Translations under genes and position numbers: made by a program | Part shown: one piece after another, positions 55,826 through 62,283 of the stretch | Position numbering within the stretch: the first letter of the stretch is position 1 | Layout of the letters: each line of letters opens with the position of its first letter | The notes under the pieces: generated by a model | The model's input: the letters and a program-made list of their open reading frames with translations, nothing else | The model's database searches: none | Told to the model about the DNA's origin: nothing | Source of the DNA: Trichosphaerium sp. ATCC 40318 | Lineage: Eukaryota; Protista; Tubulinea | Reading direction: 5' to 3' | DNA: 64,000 bases | Assembly (NCBI GenBank): GCA_038496445.1 | Contig: JALMLS010000093.1 | Location: 558,001-622,000, forward strand

Positions 55826-56820
55826 CTAAACATTGAAACTAAAGTTTTGTGTTAATACCTGTATTGTGCTCGATGCAAGGATCACAAAGAAACCAAAAAA
55901 ACGCACCTGCTTTAGATCCTCTGGAGTCGTCTTGGGGTGACGTTTTTGGATAATTTCTATAATTTTCTCCTTTGAAAGTTTCATTAACATCGCAGGATCT
56001 AGCTTCTCGCAACCACTTTCAGAAGCACCAACACGTGCTGTAACTTCAGCAACTATAAAAAAAAGGGTAAAATTAGATCAACTTGTATACAGCACACGTG
56101 AAAAAAAGACGAAAAGTGACAAACCCTTGTCCTTATTTTTTGTATCTTCTATCATTTTTTTCAAGTCTTCGTCTGTGAGCTTTAGTTTATTCTCTTCAAT
56201 GAGTTTTAGAATATCATCCTTTGAGATGACCTCCTTATCTATGAGTTCAACAAGGTCCTCAGAGAGCTCTAGTGTTTTTGAACTGTCAGTAAGATAAAAA
56301 ACAAAGACTCTCATTAAAGCGGTGAATACGCGCGTACCCTTCTTTTTGAGCATAACCACTATTTCTGCCTATGTGTTTGGTTACTTTAACGTCTGTTATT
56401 AGTACAATATACTCTCATTACCTTTGAAGGGAGGTCTGGAAGCTTTTCTGCCGTTCCTTTTGGAGTATTAGTGAATTTGTACTGTGTAACTCGTATTTAA
56501 TTATAAAACATCGTTGTAGGTCGTTTCTTCGCGTGCCTGTAGTATACACAACGTTGATTTTATCATTAGCGCATTCAGCTAAAACCACACCATCTTCGTC
56601 AAAAATAACGTCGTCTACTACATCGCCGTCATCAAGGTAAGCACCTACTTGCGTTACCGTTGTGCACAATTATTGCGTTCTACATACCCTTTAACTTTAA
56701 AAACTTGATTTTTTTAGTGCTAGTAGCCTCAGCAGCCTCTTTGAGAGCCAATACAGTTGCAGTTGGTTCAAGCGGTAGCTTGAATGTCTTGCCTTGTACT
56801 TTAACAGAATATACCTCCAT
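55826..56820 (-). CDS. Protein with putative N-terminal ubiquitin-like domain and helical C-terminus
   Basis: MEVYSVKVQGKTFKLPLEPTATVLALKEAAEA...LKLKGAYLDDGDVVDDVIFD fits a beta-grasp pattern. The 3' end is approximate. Confidence 0.6.
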
Positions 56821-56995
56821 TACGACTCTGTATGTTGGTAACGCAGCGTTGTTGTTTATGGTAACTTAACTGACCACAGAAAATTAGCGTATTTCCATAC
56901 CCGACACCACTACAGTCTGGAATTTTTGTTCCTAGTACATGCCTGTTTATCAATGGGTTCCCATAGCAAGAAACAAACATCAAAAGTGATTTAAA

Positions 56996-59900
56996 ATGAA
57001 CAAGTTTCAAATAGTAGTCGTAGGGAGCACTGGTGTGGGCAAAAGATCGCTAAAACGCCAGGTCCGGATTGCCATTTTTTTTTAGACCCGTTTATTATAA
57101 AGCTAACCTCCAAAGTTTGCAATACTGAATAGCGATGCTAAAAAGCAAGCTGACAAACCACTTAAAAATTCACAAAAGTACGGTAGAATTACGCGGCTGT
57201 TAAAATTGATCAAGCTAGGCTTGATGATGTACCCTGCGCGTTGAACATTGCAATAGTGGATTCAAAGGACCAAGGAAATAAAGCTGGCTTGATACAAAAA
57301 GGACACGCGTTCGTTATTGTGTACAGCGTTGAGGACAAGTACGTTTAATGACCGAAGAGCGTATTCTTAAACGCATCAATTCAGAAGCACAAACCAAAAA
57401 AAAAACCAACAAAAATGCAATTTGTTTTTTGATTTATTACCGGCTTATAATCGTTTTAGATCATCTTTTGATGGTGTCGCTAGTTGGCGTGATGATATAA
57501 TAGCTTTAAAAAATGAAATGGTGCTGTCACTTTCAGGTCTTGACGGTGATAACGTTCCACCTATTGTTATATGCGCTAATAAATCAGATATCGATGATGG
57601 ACGCGTAATATCGAAAAGTGAGGTACGTTAGACATGTAACATCATTAGAAAAATGTGGTAACGGACAGAATGGAACACGGGTTTTCGGAAATTAGGCCAA
57701 TCTACAAAAAACAAAATCTATTTTTTTTGGCGTTCTAGATCATTTATTTTTAATTTAAAATATGGCATCATTGTTTACAATGTTTATTAGGGCGAAGGGT
57801 TATCGTTTCAGCTCAAAAGCGCGTTTTATGAAATATCGTGTTCGACAACAAAAAACATTAACGTTGTGTACCAACATCTGGTTACGGAGCTTCAGTCGTA
57901 TAGAAGGCGTAGAGTGGTATGTCGATAATTTATGTAACCGTAGGTAAATATTTTTCTTATTCTCGTTTAGAAGCAGCGGAATGGATACTCGGATAAGAAG
58001 AGCTTGAAGAAGACAAAAAAGAAAAAAGGAGCACCGAAAGGTACCAAATTTTTTTTAATTAATTCTGCACGCTTTTCTCGCTCGTACGGCCTCAGTTGAC
58101 ACTTAAAAGGCAAAATAACTCTTGAGGGGCACACGTTTGATCTTGATAAGCCATCTGTTGAGCTTGTAGAGCATTTGATGCGTAGATTGGAGACTAAAGA
58201 AAATGGCACTTCACACAAGAACAACAAGTCTGTTCAGGTCAATAAGCGGCTTTCACAGTTAAGTGAAGAAAACTCGAGGTCCAAACGATTGATTGCAGAG
58301 CATAAGGGTCGAGTTGAAGACTTGGAGAAAAATTTAGAACACGTTAAGAGTAGTTTAAAGGAAGAAGAACAAAAAACAGCGGATCTTAGGCGTAAATTAG
58401 CCAAAACGAAGAGAAAGAAGTTAAAAGAGCGTGACGAAAAGGCAGAGATGGAAGTTAAGCTTAAACGAATGAGAGAAGACGTTAAAAAGTGGAAAGCACA
58501 GTGTGGAGAGCAAAAAGGCCAAATAGATTACTTGGAGACCGGTGAGTGTGACTTTTTTGGACAACAACTTCAAAAAACCCCGAAACCATTGGTGTAGAGT
58601 CAAACAAAATTTTGTCATTCTTTCATTGTCAACATTTTAACGGTCACTTTTGACACTTTGTTTGACACGACATCATTTTTTTTTGATGAATTTTTCTTCG
58701 GTTTCTTAACTTTTTTTTTTGTTTTTAGAGCTCCATAATTCTGAAAGAAGTAGAAGTCGTGGAAGAAGCATTGATAGTGTGCCGTACCCTACGCAAGTAG
58801 AATATGATACTGATTCTGATGGAGAGGGATATAGCCCACCAGAACGAACACTTTCCGCTTCAGGTGAGTTATATTTTTTTTAACCCTTTTTTTGGTATTT
58901 TCTGATATTCTTAGTGTTGAATTACAAGATTGATCTTAGTGATATACTAACATCCAATGAACTTGGTAAAGGATCTTATGGTATTGTTCGTAACGGTTTC
59001 TGGCGTGGCTGTCGTGTACGATAGTATTTTTCTCAAAAAGTCTAAAGAATATTTCTCATTTTTTTCTTCTTTAGATTGCTGTGAAGCAACTTTTAAGTAG
59101 TGCTACTCAAATGCAGCAAGAGGCATTTTATCAAGAAGCTGAGAGGCTATCGTACGTTATAGGATCAGTTTATTACTAGTATAGACATTGCAGTAACATA
59201 TAAACAGGCTCTTGCGACCTCACCCGCATGTAGTTCAATTTTTGGTGCGTTCATATTCTTTCTTTATTGTACATCAGTATCTTTTTGTTTATAATGCAAT
59301 AGGGAGCCACTAATGACTCAGATTCATTGTGTATAGTAACAGAACTAATAGAAGCGGGAACATTGTTGCAACGCCTTCAAGATATATCCTGGACAATATC
59401 TCAAGCGGTTGTAAAAAAAATAGTACTCGGCATTGCTGCAGGTACTCTCACTTTGCTGAGATTTATTCATAATCATAATGTCATATTAGGTATGCTTCAT
59501 CTTCACAAGGAGGGTATTATACACAGGTATGTAATATCGATATTGTGATATGAACGATTTTCTGATGTTTTCTTTAGGGATCTTGCAACACGTGCGTGTC
59601 GCCACCTCATTGCATATTTTTTTTGTCGTTTGCTAACCCTTGTTAGGTAATATATTGGTAGGCAGCATTAATAGTATGTAGGTATTATTGTAGTACTAAC
59701 AACCGCTCTAGATGTCTGCTGATGGACATGTTAAGATTTCTGATTTTGGTATGGAAAATGTCTTATTTGTAATGTTTAGTAACTCCTTTTTGTAAAGGTT
59801 ATGCACGTCAAGTACTTGAACATGAAGATCAAAACACAACTGAACAAAGTACGTACTACAGTAATTGTATTATTTCCCTTTTATTGTACTTACATTTGTG

Positions 59901-61100
59901 GTAGACCTTGGGCCGTTTAGGTGGATGGTATGCGTGTTAAATATTTGACCACTGCGCTTGTTTTCTTTCGTTTTTTAGCTATTTTTTAATACCAATAATA
60001 GGCACCTGAGAGTATGGTGGGAAGCCAGGGCAAATTTTTATACTCGAAAGCCGGCGGTACGATCAAAATGATTTTTGTTCTGGGGGTTTTGGGTTTTATT
60101 GTAGCCATCGTTTCTTACCTTTTTTGGAAGATGTGTGGATGTTCGCTGTTGTATTATATGAGATATTCTATCGGTACGATAAGTTAAAAGAATTGATCGG
60201 TTTTTTTTAATGCCAACTGTGGCTGTTGAACCAATTTTTTTTCATGTGTTTGTGGTTACTTTAATCTAACTTTCTTTTTTCTTGTAGTGAAGTACCTTAC
60301 GCCAATACAAGTTTTACTGAAGTTGTATCTGGTAAATGTCAAACAAGAGATTTATTATTGCCCATCCCAGATATACCAGTAATAGACTATATTATGACAC
60401 AAGGACAGAAGTATGATCCTAAAGAGAGACCAAAATTTTTGGATATTGTAAAAAGGTTACAAGGCCTGAAAGAAGAGGATTTAATACCTGTTCCTCCAGG
60501 TACAAGCTTTTGGGTTTTTTTCAAGCTAAAAGACGAATGTTGACTTTACTAACTCATTTTTTTTACAAAAAAAGGTGGAATTGTTACTCAGAGTCCTTGT
60601 GTTCTACGTATCTCACCTAACATGATTATAAACAAAATGAATCCTCTCATATGTAGTGTTAAAGTAGAGGAAGGTGTAGCACAGGTTGGGATGCTGCTCT
60701 ACATCCCGTCAAAAAAAGTACGCACAGATCTTTGTAAACTACTTTTTTTTGGCTCACATGTGAACACTTGCATTACCACTGACATTATCGTACTAGTTCA
60801 TTGAAATTGGCACAATATCTGCTATATTCCATGGCAACCATCAAGATGAGAAGCATGATGCCATAAAAGGACAGAAAGTAATGCTTAAAGTTCAACAAAC
60901 GAAATCTCAACGATTCGAGTATGGCAAGCATTTTGACTCATCTTGTGCACTGTACAGTAAGGTACGAACTGTTAATCCCTTTTTACAATGTTATCATGAC
61001 CGCGTAAAGAATTTATATGTAAGATTTGTAGAGTTACTAAATGTTACCATAGATACCTCGCGAGACAATGTACATTTTCCAGAGCCTCGTAAAACGGTAA
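56996..61100 (+). CDS. Multidomain protein: degenerate Ras-like domain, coiled coil, tyrosine kinase, eIF5B domain IV-like; more than 20 exons
   Basis: Ras-like: IVVVGSTGVGK, AFVIVYSV, PIVICANKSD, FYEISC. Kinase: LGKGSYG, IAVK, HRDLATRNIL, KISDFG, GPFRWMAPE, DVWMF. C-terminus: PCVLRISPNMIINKMNPLICSVKVEEG...IEIGTISAI...KGQKVMLKV...YGKHFD..LYSKIPRE. Confidence 0.85.
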
Positions 61101-61335
61101 CAAAAAAACACCAAACAAAAACAACTCCTATCTGTAAATTACACCATAAAACCACTTCTAAGTAAGCCCCACTATTCTAGTACGCGTATCTTTTACGCGC
61201 TCGGTCTTCGTAAGTCCAATACTGCGAGTTTCGCCATATTTTTTGCGTGTTCAAGTAACTGAATGATCTTTTTTTAATTTTTTGTATTTTTTTTTTAGTT
61301 GTTTCTTTTTTTATAATATGGAGATATGGATATCT

Positions 61336-62283
61336 TCAGCACGTTTGTTTATAGTCTTGTAGAACACGTATTGTTTGTTTAATTTCTTCTTCAAAAGTTG
61401 AAAGGTTTCTTGTTACATTATCCAATTCTTCATGTGCGCAATATGTCTCCAACGTCTTTGCCATTGTGTGAACCTAATGTATTTATAAGTTGTTATTTTT
61501 TAATAGCTCTCCTCAAGCAACAAAAGAGGAGACCCAGAAACGCCCAAAAGAAAACAAAAAGTCCTTAAAAAACACGTGTGCTAAACGCATCAAAAAAAAG
61601 GGTTTTAAGGTTGATAACGTTGTTTTTATGATCACAAATAAATAAATGAGGAAGCATAAGAACTCTATGGAGTAATGGACGTCAATGACTTTTTTGTTTA
61701 ATGAAATGAAAAAAATCCGTAATGACACGCGTTTTAACAAGTAAGAGAATGGATTAGAGTGGTTTTTACAAAAAACACGTACCCTTGATGCACCCATATA
61801 CATACTTGCTCCTTTTATACTGTGCACATATATTCTGGCGTTTTGAGCATCGTTTTTAGCTAATGCTTCCTATTGTCGCGTCATTATGATCCTTTTGTTT
61901 GTAATTCTTCTCTACGCACCTTAAACTTCTGCATTTGCGTCTTGGTGCTATCAAAAAACGTGTCTATCAGTTCTATTGTATATTCCGTGTCTCCTCCAGT
62001 AGTTTTCTCTAGGTCTCCGGAAACGAATCTACAGCGCTGTTAGCCGCGTATTAGAGGCTTCTAGGGCTATTTTAAATAAATCAGACAAACCTTTGCGTAT
62101 CAGCAAGCTTAAAAGTGTCTGTAGGTGCTATTGGCTCCGCTTTTCTACTTTAGACGTTAATGTAACAAATTTCCATAAACCACTTTTTTACCTTTCAGGT
62201 GCTCCTTCGACCTTACTACCGTATAGTATCCAATTCAGAGTACCCGTGATGTAAGTTACCATAATCTGAAGGCTGTTACCCAT
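61336..62283 (-). CDS. Stand-alone histidine phosphotransfer (HPt) protein (Ypd1/RdeA-like)
   Basis: GGDTEYTIELIDTFFDST...ALAKNDAQNARIYVHSIKGASMYMGASRV..AKTLE contains the phospho-accepting HxxKG motif. N-terminus MGNSLQ. Confidence 0.9.

Follow-up and report, generated by a model that had tools for sequence, protein, structure and literature searches.

A Trichosphaerium tyrosine-kinase-type gene ending in a homologue of eIF5B domain IV

Organization of the locus

The window analysed is a stretch of 64,000 nucleotides (nt) from the marine amoeba Trichosphaerium sp. ATCC 40318 (GenBank assembly GCA_038496445.1, contig JALMLS010000093.1, positions 558,001 to 622,000 of the forward strand), and all positions given below refer to it. 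The gene found at 56996-61100 encodes, from the N-terminus on, a Ras-like domain followed by a coiled coil, a kinase and a C-terminal domain homologous to domain IV (D4) of the translation factor eIF5B. It is a genuine fusion, of old date, which is expressed and kept by selection. No description of this combination of domains was found.

The gene model was derived from positions 56500-61600, read in the three forward frames. Introns feature GTACGT/GTATGT-type donors and CTAAC-like branch sites. In the published Trichosphaerium draft genome (BioProject PRJNA826761; PMC10521059) the GC content is 37.7% and introns average 75 nt, and the window agrees with these values. The gene is organized as follows (aa, amino acids; ORF, open reading frame; all features on the + strand):

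56996..61100, +, complete coding sequence: 788 codons and a stop in 24 exons; introns of 41-187 nt, all GT..AG
56996..57916, +, Ras-like small GTPase domain, exons 1-5: aa 1-~171; Pfam Ras PF00071
58110..58541, +, charged helical, coiled-coil-like region, exon 7: aa ~205-350; putative coiled coil, from weak Pfam matches and composition
58953..60459, +, kinase domain, exons 9-21: aa 405-657; Pfam PK_Tyr_Ser-Thr
59578..59657, +, micro-exons at 59578-59591 (14 nt) and 59647-59657 (11 nt): part of the catalytic loop ..DLATRNIL
60460..60499, +, end of exon 21, tail behind the kinase, ..LKEEDLIPVPP: conserved EED-IP-x-IPP tail, also found in the related kinases P0136 and P0133
60500..60574, +, junction intron, 75 nt, phase 1, GT..AG: spliced out in the contigs of runs X1 and X4 and in the ORFs P0125, P0126 and P0128
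60575..60717, +, exon 22, linker GGIVTQ, then the start of the presumed D4 beta-barrel: aa 671-718; PF14578 and human eIF5B matches
60797..60961, +, exon 23, continuation of the presumed D4 barrel, with the K-H-F-D helix: aa 719-773; human eIF5B match
61053..61100, +, exon 24, one last helix, corresponding to helix 13 of eIF5B, then the stop: TAA at 61098-61100; no counterpart of helix 14

Exon 21 (60288-60499) ends with ..EEDLIPVPP plus one base of a Gly codon, and a retained junction intron would bring a stop at 60541-60543. The two introns within D4 are both in phase 0, after K718 and K773. The exons, phases and peptide quoted in the initial annotation are all present in the sequence. The limits of exon 2 (57116-57177, 62 nt) and the start of exon 3 (57219) were set by transcript contigs. 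In the same contigs the 23 letters GATCTTGCAACACGTAATATATT, corresponding to both micro-exons minus shared end bases, are found between 59527 and 59711. The donor following the 11-nt micro-exon, GTAGGC, is unusual.

Expression of the gene

The gene is represented in ten public sequencing runs from three studies, four of which were compared with positions 56900-61300. Transcript contigs spanning the gene are intron-free, and are therefore derived from spliced RNA. A contig from run X1 (2353 nt, depth 96.6) reaches from the 5' end to 60965 and carries all the joints, including 60499/60575 (which appears in the contig listing as 60497>60573, 'cut +2') and 60717/60797. The joints in the contigs of run X4 are the same as in X1. 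In a contig from run X2, exons 22 and 23 are joined, and the sequence extends to 61156, where it is followed by adapter. Intron-free contigs with joints, including 60499/60575, come from three independent studies.

The MMETSP ORF P0125 (788 aa, annotated as 'complete') is identical to the spliced gene model, and two additional MMETSP ORFs, P0126 and P0128, likewise continue from the kinase into D4. A sibling MMETSP entry names MMETSP0405, taxid 498012, which corresponds to Trichosphaerium sp. ATCC 40318 (Amoebozoa). No public gene call has exactly the P0125 protein. The locus is one expressed gene, with one mRNA encoding the Ras-like domain, the coiled coil, the kinase and D4. The proposal of a single spliced mRNA across the kinase-D4 joint, made in the initial annotation, is hence borne out by the transcript contigs and by the identical ORF P0125. 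A mature mRNA ending at the 60541-60543 stop was rejected, as the junction intron is removed in contigs and MMETSP ORFs.

Two other MMETSP ORFs, P0007 and P0124, are intron-retaining forms (60057-60130 and 59658-59711), with early stops inside the kinase domain; they may represent pre-mRNA or regulated isoforms. Six calls of single nucleotide polymorphisms (SNPs) between Trichosphaerium isolates lie in exons, and all six are synonymous. At 60648, third codon position of Leu695 in D4, three alleles (C/G/T) occur across runs, all of them synonymous.

Homology of the C-terminal domain to eIF5B domain IV

D4 corresponds to residues 677-788, the C-terminal ~112 aa of the protein. Known examples of this domain are human eIF5B 1076-1220 (PDB 4UJC, 7TQL, 8PJ3) and the one of C. 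thermophilum (4N3G). Full-length P0125 was scanned with Pfam, and D4 was also scored separately as residues 660-788. In this segment PF14578 (GTP_EFTU_D4) scores 25.4 bits (E=1.3e-5), above the curated cut-off of 23.8; in the full-length protein the match (aa 678-752, 21.3 bits) falls slightly below it. The environmental relative P0001, described in the following section, scores 32.9 bits. Single exons are also recognizable. Exon 22 alone matches PF14578 (E=0.006) and residues 497-537 of the human/rabbit eIF5B chain 4ujc_AB (E=0.0035), and exon 23 alone matches the adjoining stretch, 539-592 of the same chain.

The joined D4, searched with phmmer against PDB, matches human eIF5B 1090-1191 with E=1.5e-13, and is about one third identical to it over 103 residues. 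Fungal and archaeal factors come next, and no other chains are listed in this search. The P0001 D4 gives a stronger match than the window D4 (E=1e-16). A profile made of the two sequences reaches E=1.1e-17; its first eleven distinct matches are e/aIF5B, followed by a SUI1 homologue and two NusA chains with E values of 0.076-0.83. E<=1e-3 is reached only by e/aIF5B chains, and weak rows of other proteins occur only in the P0001 and two-sequence-profile searches. NCBIfam aIF-2 models match D4 at their C-terminal 100 positions, and in the Atlas the clusters that lie closest in language-model features belong to PF14578. Since PDB, Pfam, NCBIfam and Atlas matches all point to e/aIF5B, the homology of D4 to the domain IV of eukaryotic eIF5B, noticed in the initial annotation from a residue pattern, is secure.

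Domains G, II and III as well as helix 12, which precede domain IV in eIF5B, were not found upstream of D4, and Pfam finds no GTP_EFTU or IF-2 domain in P0125. The junction peptide ..IPVPPGGIVTQ.. (P0125 661-677) loosely resembles ..IIVPGVEGPIVTQ.. of human eIF5B domain II (chain 290-315). The HMMER score of this resemblance is below zero, and the resemblance is probably due to chance.

Relatives, conservation and origin of the fusion

The exon encoding the kinase C-lobe was searched against protein representatives. Three matches were obtained, among them P0001, a protein of 450 aa, 49% identical, whose C-terminus extends past the kinase. P0001 is encoded on L001, a 2586-nt intron-free contig from an environmental sample of the Joint Genome Institute (JGI). 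L016, a contig from a second JGI sample, is 99.6% identical to L001. Both encode Ras, coiled coil, kinase and D4 in this order. The two contigs differ at 8 gapped positions, and their frames change at A-runs in the coiled coil. As the places differ (~810-1190 in L001, ~830-965 in L016), homopolymer errors are likely.

Window and L001 were compared by codons. The kinase shows 60% aa identity, with a nonsynonymous distance (dN) of 0.35 and a proportion of synonymous differences (pS) of 0.84, which is saturated. Values for D4 are close to these (55% aa identity, dN 0.38, pS 0.79, again saturated). The linker stretch before the kinase is 18% identical. With synonymous sites saturated, D4 is as conserved as the kinase, and is therefore held by selection. 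Judged from these codon comparisons, purifying selection on D4 is about as tight as that on the catalytic domain.

A maximum-likelihood tree was built from 45 kinase domains, leaving out intron-retaining forms and near-duplicates. P0125 and P0001 kinases are sisters (100/97). A wider clade (100/99) unites the pair with the Sel1-coiled coil-kinase P0133 and the Ank-coiled coil-kinases P0136/P0137. P0133, P0136 and P0137 have the EED-IP-x-IPP tail as well, but lack D4, and end 10-40 residues after the tail. Within this kinase clade, only the protein from Trichosphaerium and the environmental one have a Ras domain in front and a D4 behind. The branch leading to Trichosphaerium is long (0.54 vs 0.19). 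The closest named kinase relatives are amoebozoan tyrosine kinases, among which those of Balamuthia and Planoprotostelium.

Because P0125 and P0001 are sisters within a clade whose other members end after the IPxIPP tail, the simplest history would be a single gain of D4 behind the tail, before Trichosphaerium split from its uncultured relative. D4 begins with an exon of its own, as would fit exon capture.

Other D4 fusions turned up neither in the scans of metagenome and viral collections nor among the 120 best kinase relatives. Two metagenome scans for relatives gave nothing, or kinase-only matches. In the protein homologue search with D4, the P0001 query found itself alone and the P0125 query found nothing, the word index not reaching eIF5B. 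Close D4 relatives were absent from the IMG/VR viral contigs scanned, which is a weak test of a giant-virus origin. The eIF5B gene of Trichosphaerium itself was not located. Literature searches on fusions of kinases to GTP_EFTU_D4 or eIF5B domain IV turned up no relevant paper, in agreement with the initial annotation, to which no described protein with this architecture was known.

Ras-like domain, coiled coil and kinase

The Ras family PF00071 matches aa 6-171 of P0125 with 62.9 bits (62.9-67.3 bits over both scans). In the window the P-loop reads GSTGVGKR (aa 10-17), with GKR instead of GK[ST], and DSKD (aa 56-59) replaces DxxG (both motifs lie in 56996-57338). The canonical G1 GxxxxGK[ST] and G3 DxxG are thus missing from this domain. 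The environmental relative has a canonical P-loop, GDEKVGKS, but DVGV for DxxG. The G4 motif NKSD is retained in both. By its motifs, the Ras-like domain is possibly a pseudo-GTPase. The region between Ras and kinase gives only weak coiled-coil-type Pfam matches.

The kinase domain matches PF07714 (PK_Tyr_Ser-Thr) at aa 405-657, with 200.5 bits and E=3.8e-59, over profile positions 4-258 of 258. The motifs GKGSYG, AVK, HRDLATRN, DFG and PFRWMAPE make up a complete tyrosine-kinase-type set, and the kinase is apparently catalytically active and of the tyrosine-kinase type. That the catalytic motifs are intact had been stated in the initial annotation, which had also set the protein apart from Roco proteins; both points hold. 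In the whole P0125 no COR or leucine-rich repeat (LRR) family was found by Pfam at E<=0.1. The absence of a COR domain means that the protein is not a Roco protein, and a Roco (Roc-COR-kinase) identity was rejected.

The upstream neighbour of the gene, on the minus strand at 56078-56820, has a weak ubiquitin-like match at its start (PF00240, E=0.008).

Residues and helices conserved or lost in D4

Roles of single residues were taken from Kuhle & Ficner for the C. thermophilum domain (PMC4236685; chain offset 513, checked on six residues) and from Lapointe et al. for human eIF5B (bioRxiv 10.1101/2021.12.09.471821). Each line gives the eIF5B residue, followed by the residue in the window copy and in the environmental copy:

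Val999, kept: I696 / I
Lys1058, kept: K749 / K
Arg1070-His1071 (human R1174-H1175, acceptor-stem backbone), kept: K762-H763 / K-H
Phe992, kept: I689 / I
Asp1041, kept: N732 / D
Human R1188, kept: R776 / R
Gly1001, replaced: S698 / R
Glu1039, replaced: F729 / Y
Ala1056, replaced: M747 / T
His1042, replaced: H733 / L
Human R1105 (acceptor-stem contact), replaced: M692 / S

Ile at the position of Phe992 is found in a few eIF5Bs (PMC4236685). The isoelectric point (pI) of D4 is 9.5 in the window and 9.2 in the relative. The D4 alignment stops at human residue 1191, with 8 residues remaining, so that the protein ends at about human 1200. Helix 14, with W1207, E1218 and I1219, is therefore absent. 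These three residues are the eIF1A contacts of human eIF5B, and human eIF5B cut before helix 14 has a ~100-fold shorter lifetime on the 48S complex (bioRxiv 10.1101/2021.12.09.471821). The D4 of the relative ends with an unrelated tail of 16 residues.

Possible functions of the fused domain

The overall best explanation, in which we place moderate confidence, is that an eIF5B D4 was captured by the kinase and may serve it as a docking module. Before that, the proteins of this kinase subfamily were already made up of an N-terminal module that varies, a coiled coil, the kinase and the EED-IP-x-IPP tail; the 3' exons captured would stem from a duplicate of the eIF5B gene. The layout of the subfamily, and the location of D4 on three exons of its own behind a phase-1 intron, fit such an event. 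Capture would have occurred once, prior to the separation of the two lineages, and D4 has been under purifying selection since. The basic barrel may bring a probably dimeric kinase to RNA or to a ribosome-associated partner, the most plausible being the tRNA acceptor arm or a site of the translation machinery. Docking would involve the conserved K-H helix and Lys749, and would do without the canonical methionyl-A76 pocket, which is altered, and without the eIF1A-binding helix 14, which is missing. The degenerate Ras-like domain would be a regulatory or scaffolding element, and not a cycling GTPase.

Parts of this explanation differ in strength. As far as sequence can tell, a tRNA- or ribosome-linked role of D4 is plausible. 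Docking to RNA or to the translation apparatus via the conserved basic face is a tentative proposal, somewhat short of probable, favoured because D4 is basic and because K762/H763, K749 and I696 are kept in both lineages. Doubtful is that the protein is an independent amoebozoan translation-coupled kinase, analogous but unrelated to the kinase GCN2 discussed below, which would read the state of tRNA or ribosomes via D4 and phosphorylate components of the translation machinery.

Several data weigh against the docking of D4 to RNA or ribosomes. To the replacements listed above it must be added that the replaced residues of the 3'-end pocket are otherwise conserved from EF-Tu to eIF5B, and that isolated native eIF5B D4 binds its ligand only weakly (PMC4236685). 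Replacements in the A76/methionine pocket differ between the two fused lineages. The fusion is known from two lineages, and surface conservation mapping is thus unreliable. AlphaFold2 models have pLDDT (predicted local distance difference test) values of 33 (P0001 alone, single sequence) and 36 (two-row D4 alignment), too low for a usable model. In eIF5B, moreover, ribosome docking is the task of the G-II-III domains, which are absent here.

Nearly as likely as RNA docking, and a serious if tentative alternative, is that the barrel has been turned to protein binding or autoregulation, for instance docking substrates or controlling the kinase from within the molecule, with no link left to tRNA or ribosomes. 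The most deeply conserved pocket residues of D4 are replaced, differently in each lineage, and R1105 as well as helix 14 are gone, as might be expected of a re-used domain. Stretches common to both fused copies, yet unlike eIF5B (QQ-K-QR, LYSKIPR-T-YI--SLVK), point in the same direction, and at the opposite end the sister kinases have Ank or Sel1, both modules for protein interaction. Retention of the basic charge and of the K-H acceptor-stem helix argues against re-use of this kind.

It is much less likely that D4 keeps the canonical activities, binding of the methionylated CCA end and of the eIF1A tail, the kinase being a sensor of initiator methionyl-tRNA (Met-tRNAi) or a decoy of eIF5B. 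The homology to domain IV is clear, with the identity to human eIF5B reported above; Lys1058 and the R/K-H motif are kept, and the change of Phe992 to Ile has precedents among eIF5Bs. Against this stand the absence of helix 14, whose removal so shortens the stay of human eIF5B on the 48S complex, and the lack of conservation of Gly1001, Glu1039, Ala1056 and R1105. Binding of Met-tRNAi and eIF1A by the fused D4 appears unlikely because pocket residues are replaced and helix 14 is missing. The notion, put forward in the initial annotation, that the captured module preserves the tRNA and eIF1A functions of eIF5B is consequently not supported as it was stated; the roles proposed there of tRNA sensor, ribosome-targeting domain or decoy are to be taken as hypotheses.

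The D4 exons might alternatively be a neutral passenger, a recently captured and decaying fragment of an eIF5B duplicate spliced onto the kinase. D4 is shorter than in eIF5B and the Trichosphaerium branch is long, as would be expected in that case. The same fusion is found, however, in a lineage distant enough for synonymous sites to be saturated, and D4 has been conserved like the kinase while the linker drifted. The D4 frame is open in both lineages, and SNPs are synonymous. On conservation, open frame and synonymous SNPs a decaying pseudo-exon was rejected, and the passenger explanation has a very slight probability. Slighter still is the probability of an artefact, either two neighbouring genes or a chimeric assembly, in favour of which no point was found: genome, transcript contigs, MMETSP ORFs and the two environmental contigs agree, and two separate genes were rejected on the joints seen in transcripts and on the 75-nt junction intron, which leaves no room for a promoter. 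Neutral passenger and artefact are excluded for practical purposes.

In the descriptions found, the domain IV of eIF5B is otherwise always the end by which the universal subunit-joining GTPase holds tRNA. That two lineages have it as an accessory domain, under selection, in a signalling kinase suggests that the barrel can work outside the factor. The fused copies also provide biochemistry with a natural minimal D4, made of the barrel and helix 13 and devoid of helix 14. Should D4 touch tRNA or ribosomes, the gene would represent a second, independent wiring of a kinase to translation besides GCN2, and the first with a tyrosine-kinase-type enzyme. Should it make no such contact, it would be a clean case of a translation-factor fold gaining a new function by exon capture.

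Comparison with known systems

Fused D4 and the domain IV of eIF5B/aIF5B are homologous, and are collinear over human residues 1090-1191; by this homology, fused D4 is expected to be a six-stranded translation-factor barrel followed by a helix. Lys1058, the R/K-H helix alpha-L5, R1188 and the overall basic charge are kept. In contrast to eIF5B, the fused D4 sits behind a kinase, without the G-II-III domains or helix 12. It also lacks helix 14, and has Gly1001, Glu1039, Ala1056 and R1105 replaced.

GCN2 is a Ser/Thr kinase of eIF2-alpha with a tRNA-binding domain resembling histidyl-tRNA synthetase (HisRS) and a ribosome-binding C-terminus. To our knowledge, it is the only well-known precedent for how a kinase fusion of this type could work. 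The likeness is one of analogy, as in both proteins a kinase is joined to a domain of the translation apparatus that binds tRNA in its original setting. Kinase group and borrowed domain (HisRS-like in GCN2) are different, and GCN2 has no Ras domain or coiled coil. No homology to GCN2 was seen, and neither a HisRS-like domain nor an eIF2-alpha-kinase-type catalytic domain was found in P0125 by Pfam.

Roco/LRRK-type proteins similarly have a domain of the Ras superfamily on the same chain as a kinase, and a weak Roc match (E=0.048) was seen in the Trichosphaerium protein. This differs in having no COR and no LRR, and in the coiled coil interposed between the GTPase and the tyrosine-kinase-type kinase. 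The amoebozoan coiled-coil kinases P0136 and P0133 are members of the same 100/99 clade, and share the coiled coil before the kinase and the post-kinase tail. They feature N-terminal Ank or Sel1 modules and end 10-40 residues after the tail, whereas the Trichosphaerium protein has Ras at one end and D4 at the other.

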